Shown: positions 39,301 to 52,583, numbered from the stretch's first letter. The stretch is 64,000 nt of DNA from Bugula neritina (GCA_964035545.1 OZ037768.1:9518741-9582740), one strand, 5' to 3'. Made by a program: numbers and translations. Notes: generated from the sequence alone by a model not told the origin.

Positions 39301-42300
39301 TACCTGCTGTTCAAATTGTCAAGGAAGAATTAAGTTGAAATATTGGTCACTTAACTACTTTTTACTGCAAGGTACACAAACAAATAGGTTATAAAAAGCT
39401 TATAGCTATTTGCAGATGACTGCCTGTTGTGGCATTGTGTGAAAGTGAATTCATAAATGGAGTGGTGTGCTATTCACATGTTTGCTCAACTAAGGTTCCT
39501 AATAGACATTTCTATTTGTCTAAAGATTCCCAATGAAACAGTCCAAAGTGAAATTTAAAACTCTTTAATTTTGTGTTGATTCATGGAGCTGTTCAGACCA
39601 TCTACATTCAAGTGTTAATAGTGTTAATAGTGTCACTAGTGAAGCTTCCACACTCTTACCAACAGCATGCCGAAGCTGCCTCACAGCACACTTTGATGGC
39701 AGCGAATTACTACTGCGCTGCCTGCATTATAGAATCTTAAGCTCATTGCACTAGTTTTGCGTGCAGTAGCCTTCAATACCTGGCATTTAGCAGCTCTCTG
39801 TATGTATTATAAGTAAATGAATTATTTGTTTATTTATGTTTATTATTTCTTGAACCTTAACTAAATCAGATTAGAACTGTTTAAGTTATTCTTTCTGTGG
39901 TGTTCTGGCAGCAATAAAAAGGCAGCATCAGTGGTTAGTGCTGACTAGCTGACTATTGATTAGAGAAAACTCTGATTTAATCTTTAGACGAGTGGAGCTT
40001 CAGTGCAAGTGGCGACTGATATGCTACCTGGCTCTACCGAGAGAGCAGTCACAGTATCTGGTTCATCTGGCTCCATAACTTGCTGTCTCAAGGAAATCTG
40101 TTCTGTAATGTTAGAGGTATGAGTGCACATCTATATGGCAGCGTGATCTAAGAGTACACACCTATGTGAGTAGAGTAGCACTAACCAACTAAAGTAAAGT
40201 TTAGTTGGTTAGTACATTTTATGTTAAAGTAATGAAGTACTGTAGATTAATGTACTTTCTTGATAGAATAAAAACCAAGCGTAATGCTTTCATATTTATT
40301 GAGTGAGCATTATTTTTAACGTATGTAAAAATCAAATTTCGTTTAAAGTCTTCATTTATACATGGACCCTTGATTGAAAGGGTTTTTTAAAGCAGGCTAA
40401 GGACTTGTTTTCTATTATGGCACAGAAGCAGTTATGACTGAATGTTCTTCCTAGCATCACCAATGGACTTTACAGGGATTCAAACCATTGAACTATAACC
40501 TGGTTATAGTTTTAGTTCAGTGATTCAAACCACTGACCTTGTGTTTACTAAGCCTGTGCTCAAATCACTAGACCCCAGCTGCTCTCTATCATTTATAGCA
40601 GCTATATTTTTGTGAAATTTATTTATTGTGTAATAATAAACAAGCCTCTATCTAGTATCTGTTAGACATGCAATATTTTCATGTTCTGTGTTTTCTAGCA
40701 AAGTCCACTAAAAGTTTTGACAATACTACTTGCTTCATCATAGGCTGTTGTGGATAAAGCATAATTTGAGCAATATGTATAGAATATAGTGGGAAATGTG
40801 GCAGTTATTATAATCACATGACGGCAGTGTTTTCATTACTTCCATGTGTATAGTTGGAGTGTTAATTAGTATAAAATCTTGTTAAACAAAGCATCTCACG
40901 AGAAAAAAATTAAATTACGTGACTAATTATGACAGTGATAACAACACACAGCATAATAATTGGCAATATTAGCCTACAACTTTTGTGATTGAAGCAAAAC
41001 ATAGCTTGATGCCCTCTTCTGACACTATGGAAGGATATGCTGTGCTACCCACAGTGGGTAGAAATCTTGAAAGCAGGTTTTTCTTCATTGACATTGAAGA
41101 GAAATGCTGCATCAGTTAAATTAGTAGAATAGGTTTCTACCAGAAATATTGATGATTTATCATATGTTAGTGTTTGGGCTGAACAGCAGGTTGCCTGACA
41201 ATAGATAAGATTACTTGCTGCATGTTACTGTGTAGGCATTAGTGAGAAAATTAGCAGTATTAGTACTACTTTAAATTACTCTGTAAGTTATTTAGCTATT
41301 GGTTGCATTGTGTGGAAGCTGCTAGTGCTGCCAGCTGCTCCTAGCAAACATTTTCTATCGCTGTGTTTATCGGCTCTGATAGATTCTTGTAAAGTATACT
41401 TATTTGTGTGTAGTCGCCACCTAAAGGAGCTACAATACCGTACCGTCCAAAGACTGCTATACAAGCTCCTCTAATGTACGCAGCCGCTGTAGGCGCAGCA
41501 GCCCAGGCAGGATACACTCTACCAGCACAACTACACCCTATGGCTGCCGTAAATGTACAGCAGCAGCCGTCTACAAGTCATGTATTGCAGCAGCAGACAC
41601 CGAGCTCACAGACGGCCACTATAGCCGCTGAGGTTTGTTGGTGTTTCACTTACTCTCATATTTTATCCATCGTATAAATACTCAACTATACATTTAGGAG
41701 CAGTAATGGAGGAATTGAGATAGCCTAAGTTCTTTAATTTTATCATTAAATTTGGTTTGAGGCGCAGGTTGAAAATTTTTGCGAGAACATAACTTTTTTG
41801 TTACATCTTTTATTTAGAACACAGGCTTTTCTCAATTTCTCCATTACTGCACCTACCTCCAACTATAGCCAACTACCAACATAACTTTTAATAACTATGA
41901 TTTACCAGTAAATAGTAATACTAGCGGATGACATTCTACTGCATGTGGTACATACTGTTAATGTATGTGTTTTTATAAAAAGACAAACAAGTGATTGATG
42001 AGAAAATAATGATCAATATTTATAGGGAAACTATGTAAGTTATAGCATTTTAAAACCTGTTGAAAGTGAGTAACCGATAATACGGCTTTGATAAAATGAA
42101 ACCTGACCAATATCTACAAAGTGTTAAACAGACATTTAAATTTCAATAGAAATTGAACATTGAAACCAAAGTGTCCGTGACTCAATAGCATAGCATAGTG
42201 TGACAAGCTAAATGTTAATGTTAGTTTATTGTTCTAGGACCAATAACTTCATGACGTACAGTGATTTTCTTCGTGAAAGTTGCACATAATGTTTCACCAT

Positions 42301-51683: not shown

Positions 51684-52583
51684 GAGCAGACGAGCAGACA
51701 ACGTTGAGTACCGGTAAGCTACTATAAAATGTAGGCCACCAGATAAAATCACTCATCTTCCTGTTGGAATATTATATACCCATGCTTATGGTCATGGTTA
51801 TGCCAAAAGCAAATAGGTTACAGAGGTGGTTAAACCCAATCTGCTTCTTGCAGTGCTCTTTTAGGCTGCAATTTCTAGCTTTAAGTAAGCATACAAAAAC
51901 CATGTTGTAACTTGAGCTACTAGCCAGTGCTATGGTAAACTGTGATGATATTTTTTAATATTTAAAATTATCCTTCTTTGTTCTTTCTATATTTTCATAT
52001 TGAAATTATAAAACAAATTACTAAATAGTCAAGGCTTTGATTTTTGTGCTTAATAAATGTTTCTAGTGTTAATAGCAATTTTTATGAAATACATCACTTT
52101 TAATAAAAGTTTTATGTCACATAATACATAAACATAATATACTACAAAAATACCAATCTTGGTCCAAAATCGATTAATTGAATTCTAAAGCTTAGTTATT
52201 AGACTGACCACTACTGACTATATTTCCTTTAAAAAATTTAAGTGCATAAATTCTTGATTCATAGCCATCAACTTCATGGCTGTTTTCACTTTTCATTAGT
52301 GGTGTTCATATTGCAAATAGATATAACTATCAACAATGTATTCTGTTACAATTTTATTGTTTCTAAGATATTAGCAATCAATGAATATTTTTAACAATAT
52401 GTGAAAATTATATTCATAAATGCCAGGTAATAGCCATAAAATTAATAATGCATATTACATATATCTGTACACACAAAGCTAAACCAGTTTAGTTAGGCCC
52501 ATTCACATTAACCCCACAAGGTTATAATAGCCATAATAATAACAATTTGTGTGCATGATCCTTGCAGTGCTGTTGATACAGAC

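Follow-up and report, generated by a model that had tools for sequence, protein, structure and literature searches.

Short Insertions With 8-bp Target Duplications as Probable Excision Scars of a P-Superfamily Transposon Family

Introduction

The closest described system for the sequences considered here is the P element of Drosophila melanogaster, which, like them, is associated with an 8-bp target duplication, and whose transposase combines a THAP domain, a coiled coil and an RNase H fold with a GTP-binding insertion. The P transposase makes an unusual cut, staggered by 17 nt and producing 3' extensions, according to the work of Beall and Rio (1997) as cited in PMC7776569 and PMC10983969, and the break at the donor site is mended by either homologous recombination or end joining (PMC7776569; PMC10983969). 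The targets of this element share a palindromic 14-bp motif, ATRGTCCGGACWAT, centred on the duplication (PMC2577343). End joining of two such long overhangs predicts that both copies of the duplication are kept, with a variable join of partial transposon ends between them. To our knowledge, the cut sites of the relatives of the Drosophila P element, including the vertebrate THAP9 enzymes, are poorly known, and the open-access literature, as far as we searched it, offers no account of a natural population of P-type scars across a genome.

Here we describe such a population, starting from a single stretch of DNA of 64,000 nucleotides (the window; G000:C4:9518741-9582740), with whole-genome counts taken from a 216-Mb eukaryotic assembly. 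A first-pass annotation of the window had pointed to a family of very short hairpin insertions, viewed there either as minimal transposons or as a recurrent product of collapse or repair of a larger element. We conclude that these units are very probably donor-site scars, each resulting from an independent insertion and a later excision of one P-superfamily transposon family, and we refer to them as scars in what follows.

Short Insertions in the Window

Three units of 26-38 bp, each flanked by a perfect 8-bp direct repeat, are found in the window exactly where they had been annotated. The features are as follows, with positions counted from the first nucleotide of the window.

Probable excision scar 1: 40486-40522, (-) strand; 37 bp, inside SINE copy A, with ends matching the termini of a 2.2-kb element
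Target-site duplication ATTCAAAC around scar 1: copies at 40478-40485 and 40523-40530, no strand
Probable excision scar 2: 51412-51449, (+) strand; 38 bp, 21 nt of the left end blunt-joined to 17 nt of the right end
Target-site duplication GTTTCACT around scar 2: copies at 51404-51411 and 51450-51457, no strand
Probable excision scar 3: 51658-51683, (+) strand; 26 bp, with one G>A change
Target-site duplication GAGCAGAC around scar 3: copies at 51650-51657 and 51684-51691, no strand
Extra tandem third copy of GAGCAGAC: 51692-51699, no strand; directly after the second copy
Paralogous empty site with a single ATTCTAAC: 58979-58986, no strand; in SINE copy B

Scar 1 consists of 21 nt of the left end (with one G>A change), 1 nt of filler and 15 nt of the right end, while in scar 3 the 18 nt of the left end and the 12 nt of the right end share a palindromic TATA, which makes it a 4-nt microhomology join. 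SINE copy B aligns straight over the insertion point in SINE copy A, leaving a gap of 45 nt, the summed length of the 37-bp unit and one 8-bp repeat, and its single ATTCTAAC is one mismatch away from the word duplicated around scar 1, bearing out the earlier claim that the first unit interrupts one SINE copy and that the other holds the uninterrupted target. The inner hairpin, also claimed earlier, is present in two of the three units as a weak fold (-5.3 kcal/mol) and absent from the 26-bp unit, which has no fold; this hairpin is simply the leftover inverted repeat.

The window contains three matches to the left-end 18-mer, versus 0.17 expected, and five to the right-end 12-mer, versus 0.98 expected; near-matches to the right-end word at 36548 and 54580 were examined and are not scars. 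Three scars within 11.2 kb are unusual, with approximately 0.011 expected per 11.2 kb, in a window that was selected for this triple. The extra copy of the duplication beside scar 3 could be a pre-existing tandem or, alternatively, could have come about through another round of insertion and excision at this target, with no element nucleotides left behind. Directly upstream of the same scar, a (TAG)n microsatellite occupies positions 51625-51648.

The Parent Element and Its Ends

Some of the left tips that have no right tip nearby continue into unique sequence. Five such loci were fetched, and each contains an element, 2220-2230 bp long, that shares both tips and is flanked by a perfect 8-bp duplication. 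Eight full copies are present, 95-100% identical to the query copy, along with a few rearranged or deleted copies, and the family also includes longer deletion derivatives, represented by a 274-bp copy (L051) and a copy of roughly 650 bp. No long ORF was found in the 2.2-kb element, and it is therefore non-autonomous. Left ends that continue into the element interior number only 12 genome-wide (searched with a 27-mer, allowing up to 3 mismatches).

The two ends form an imperfect inverted repeat. On the left, the sequence is CACTGAAC-TGAAAC-TATAACCC-TGGAAAGG, and on the right, when reverse-complemented, it is CATTGAAC-TATAA(T/C)CCCC-TGGAATGG. The repeat, first described as 9 bp long, is in fact longer, being offset by a 6-nt insertion, the extra TGAAAC, that is found in the left end only. 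A guess that the left end continues as CCCC produced a single match and was wrong.

Two further observations concern sequences encountered alongside the element. A locus considered as a divergent copy (L068; G000:C7:11303250-11313249) is instead occupied by an LTR retrotransposon of Gypsy type, unrelated to the element, whose gag-like and pol ORFs are long (294 and 1402 aa) and which adjoins a sequence weakly matching the right part of the 2.2-kb element. In addition, dozens of loci, frequently grouped in local arrays with copies on both strands, are 70-87% identical to a segment of 85-115 bp inside the 2.2-kb element (positions 404-520; L062:482-600); this segment is probably a short repeat, unrelated to the element, that was captured by it.

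Genome-Wide Occurrence

A strict pattern, requiring 18 nt from the left tip and 12 nt from the right with 0-30 nt in between, recovered 120 sites versus none for the reversed-pattern control, and a looser one, in which exact ends of 10 nt (left) and 9 nt (right) may stand up to 30 nt apart, raised the count to 211, again versus none. The degenerate pattern suggested in the first-pass annotation, searched as proposed there, produced 268 and 257 matches on the two strands versus one and one for the control, and because this pattern is its own reverse complement, these amount to roughly 270-300 sites. The high genomic copy number anticipated from the window is thus confirmed, by the 211 exact-ended sites as well as by the degenerate search. 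When the 211 scars are set against the 12 left ends that continue into an element, there are about 18 scars for every surviving element.

The flanks were read for 52 of the at least 211 scars. The target duplication is perfect (8/8) in 39 of these, has 1-2 mismatches in 12 and contains an indel in the remaining one. The duplicated words are all different among the 52, and the scars therefore represent independent insertion sites. From 47 sites, a target motif can be written as A-T-D/GTTnCAAC/H-A-Y, the slashes enclosing the duplication, with A at -3 and T at -2, the duplication itself carrying G1 T2 T3. C5 A6 A7 C8, followed by A at +10 and C or T at +11.

Local hopping in the style of the P element was considered and rejected, as on C1 and C2 the spacing of the scars shows no more clustering at 20-100 kb than would be expected from random placement. 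Very short-range pairs do stand out, with a second scar within 1.5 kb at 3 of approximately 49 loci, and with one tandem pair. Such second scars are seen in L025 and in L061, and at G000:C6:10541393-10541471 two scars are arranged head to tail with neither a spacer nor a duplication between them.

A few remnants depart from the common structure. Those at G000:C1:34474872-34474903 and G000:C3:3751304-3751341 are palindromic, possessing the first 10 nt of the tip followed by GGAAAT...ATTTCC, and they resemble scars of a second, related P-like family. Another, at G000:C1:24638678-24638713, possesses right-end-type sequence at both tips and no TGAAAC insertion, which suggests either that its source element had right-type ends on both sides or that it belongs to a sister family.

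Lengths of the Retained Ends

Among the 52 scars with flanks, retention of the right end peaks at 14 nt and stops at 18, and retention of the left end peaks at 19 nt and stops at 22-23, of which 22 is the safer figure because at left position 23 the T is in most cases also compatible with being the first nucleotide of AT-rich filler or of the right end. In the scars, which are 24-49 bp in length, the left end contributes 10-23 nt and the right end 9-18 nt, the exceptions being 2 of the 211 that retain 24 nt or more of the left end, one of them ambiguous (G overlap); in none of the 211 does the retained right end reach 20 nt. The positions left 22 and right 18, which are upper bounds moulded by repair as well as by the cut, are the homologous position in the alignment of the two repeats, immediately before TGGAA. 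Units of 50-80 bp number only 10, all of them accounted for by filler, poly-G or tandem scars. The scar at C4:18557712 retains 30-31 nt of the left end, and so some remnants arise in another way.

These lengths bear on one alternative in particular, that the units are internal-deletion derivatives, produced not by direct joining of staggered-cut overhangs but by template-directed gap repair (SDSA) that was aborted, or by slippage of a resident copy between its inverted repeats. Abortive template-directed repair does happen in this family, as is evident from the 274-bp and roughly 650-bp derivatives and from the remnant that retains 30-31 left-end nucleotides, and templated filler, present in many scars, is also typical of synthesis-dependent repair. 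However, abortive synthesis should scatter breakpoints broadly, whereas the lengths observed are bimodal, with sharp caps at homologous positions of the terminal inverted repeats that are exceeded by 2 nt in only 2 of 211 cases on the left and in none on the right, and none of the units of 50-80 bp contains sequence from the element interior. We thus consider this alternative improbable for the units in question, and read them as the products of excision.

Diversity of the Junctions

The junctions were tallied by hand and by eye over the first 100 sites of the 211-site listing. In this count, 81 of the 100 scars have distinct junction sequences, no junction class exceeds about 5%, and the nine classes that do recur, with 2-5 members each, are all simple joins free of filler. 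Examples of recurrence are the 26-mer of scar 3, found at no fewer than four other loci, and one 32-mer, found at five sites at least. Overall, the junctions are simple joins, joins with 1-4 nt of microhomology or joins with templated filler, and in many scars the filler echoes the nearby end sequence (a duplicated GTTATAG or AACTATA) or consists of poly-G runs. In two cases, L038 (the G000:C1:25572046 region) and G000:C1:26497173-26497225, the G-run has grown to 21 and 16 G, respectively, which could be due to slippage after repair or to untemplated addition during repair.

The same tally is informative as to whether the units might themselves be mobile, as ultra-small MITEs made of two transposon tips and moved by the transposase of the family. 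Such mobility would agree with the presence of a separate 8-bp duplication at each unit, with the identical sequences found at separate loci (the 26-mer and the 32-mer just mentioned) and with the numerical excess of scars over long copies. Yet the shared internal sequence and shared length by which MITEs are recognized are not seen, as most junctions are distinct and lengths vary, and the classes that recur are of the filler-free kind that independent repair can reproduce. The units also contain nothing inward of the retention cap, so that they would be devoid of any subterminal binding sites, while the Drosophila P element requires internal transposase-binding sequences (PMC7776569), and an A/G polymorphism in the right end is common to the long copies and the scars. 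This alternative appears very improbable to us. The first-pass annotation had itself named unique junctions, beforehand, as the outcome that speaks against a minimal mobile transposon; with junctions mostly unique and nothing retained inward of the inferred cut site, that proposal finds no support, and the other one made there, in which a larger element repeatedly collapses or is repaired to such a product, turns out to be essentially right. Scars of excision remain our reading of these units.

Transposase Remnants and Superfamily Assignment

A whole-genome scan for Pfam PF21787 (P-type transposase, the N-terminal part of the RNase H domain) identified four loci, two of which are physically joined to the ends of the scar family. 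In one of these, L067, the match is positioned 1.7 kb inside the right end, and the last 700 bp are 82% identical to the 2.2-kb element. In the other, L071/L075, the match adjoins the left end, which is 87% identical over 310 bp. The linked ORF fragments encode RNaseH_N, a GTP-binding insertion domain, RNaseH_C and a coiled coil, with PF21787, PF21788 and PF21789 all above the cut-off in the end-joined copies L067 and L075/L071, and with THAP represented by a weak, sub-threshold C-terminal remnant only (E=0.034), just inside the left end. Both linked transposase copies are decayed, and among the four loci of the genome-wide PF21787 scan no intact autonomous copy of the scar family was found. 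L067 was also considered as a divergent copy and rejected, being 5'-truncated, with no left end within 10 kb. The best-preserved P-type gene is that of L072 (G000:C8, at approximately 1.834 Mb), whose protein is 68% identical to the linked one and, when compared with solved structures (PDB), has the Drosophila P transposase (6p5a) as its sole match (E=1.8e-6). Long elements with the same ends and a transposase, which had been suggested as a target for the search, do exist in part: 2.2-kb copies are present and P-type remnants are joined to the ends, but the 2.2-kb copies themselves possess no long ORF.

The excision of hAT elements runs via hairpins on the flanking DNA, and their footprints contain no transposon-end sequence. 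That the units are hAT-family micro-elements or footprints is exceedingly unlikely, even though hAT elements often have CA...TG tips and 8-bp duplications, as the only matches of the coding remnants joined to the ends are to P-type families and to the structure of the P transposase, and as excision through flank hairpins would not leave behind 12-22 nt of transposon end. Because P-type coding remnants are physically joined to the ends, we assign the family, on the strength of these remnants, to the P superfamily and not to hAT; of the superfamilies named in the first-pass annotation, hAT, the leading guess, was wrong, and P, listed there as a possibility, was correct. The scar family is a new family of the P superfamily, and the chemistry that explains its scars is already known.

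A Model for the Origin of the Scars

In the explanation that we prefer, of donor-site scars left by a P-superfamily element, the insertion of the element would create the 8-bp target duplication, and at excision the transposase would nick the transferred strand exactly at each tip, while the other strand would be cut inside the inverted repeat, approximately 22 nt in at the left end and approximately 18 nt in at the right end, at both ends directly before a conserved TGGAA(A/T)GG. The flanking DNA would thereby keep long 3' overhangs of transposon-end sequence, which host end joining may then seal bluntly, through 1-4 nt of microhomology (such as the palindromic TATA) or with a short templated filler, the expected product being a remnant of 24-49 bp between both copies of the duplication. 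Both the cut positions and the route of repair are deduced here from the repair products, and no locus came to light at which one allele has the full element and another the scar.

A further proposition is that the scars make up a natural map of cleavage, according to which a non-insect P-superfamily transposase would also make a very long staggered cut, with the inner cut placed by the repeat motif before TGGAA and not by distance from the tip, and with unequal overhangs of approximately 22 and 18 nt. A cut set by sequence and not by distance is suggested because the two ends differ by an indel. On this proposition, read as it is from the sequences of the scars, we find ourselves evenly balanced between acceptance and doubt. 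If it is true, then the scars, at approximately 18 per surviving element, would constitute a countable fossil record of end-joined cut-and-paste events, and the occurrence of hundreds of natural scars in a distant invertebrate would suggest that the long stagger is a trait of the superfamily. For genome annotation, such scars would explain palindromic "insertions" of 24-49 bp with 8-bp duplications, which are missed by repeat finders and which could wrongly pass for micro-MITEs.

Comparison With Known Systems

One system to be compared is that of the Stowaway-like MITEs that originate from Tc1/mariner elements through microhomology-mediated miniaturisation (PMC3814204), and that, like the scars, are short and keep both ends. 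As described in that article, these MITEs have been amplified as uniform families of at least 100 bp, whereas the scars are 24-49 bp long, nearly each has its own junction, and they end at the inferred cut site.

Another system is the zebrafish Pdre2/THAP9 (PMC10983969), which, like the scar family, is a non-insect member of the P superfamily with short terminal repeats and 8-bp duplications, and whose coding copies, one or a few in number, are accompanied by multiple copies with internal deletions, as is the case here. The difference is in the scars: genome-wide scars made of terminal remnants are not reported in that paper, and the cuts made by zfTHAP9 have not been defined by such scars.

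The closest parallel is with the Drosophila P element. The domain order of its transposase (THAP, coiled coil, RNase H fold, GTP-binding insertion) is the same as in the linked remnants, and its excision footprints, like the scars, keep both duplications and parts of both inverted repeats after end joining. The target motifs of the two agree at the outer positions (AT.GT....AC.A) and differ in the centre, and the end sequences are unrelated. While the stagger of the P element is 17 nt at both ends, that of the scar family would be approximately 22 nt at the left and approximately 18 nt at the right, and, given the 6-nt insertion by which its ends differ, the inner repeat motif, and not the distance from the tip, seems to position the cut. 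Finally, unlike the footprints of the P element, the scars described here are natural and are fixed in an assembled genome, at approximately 18 for each element that survives.
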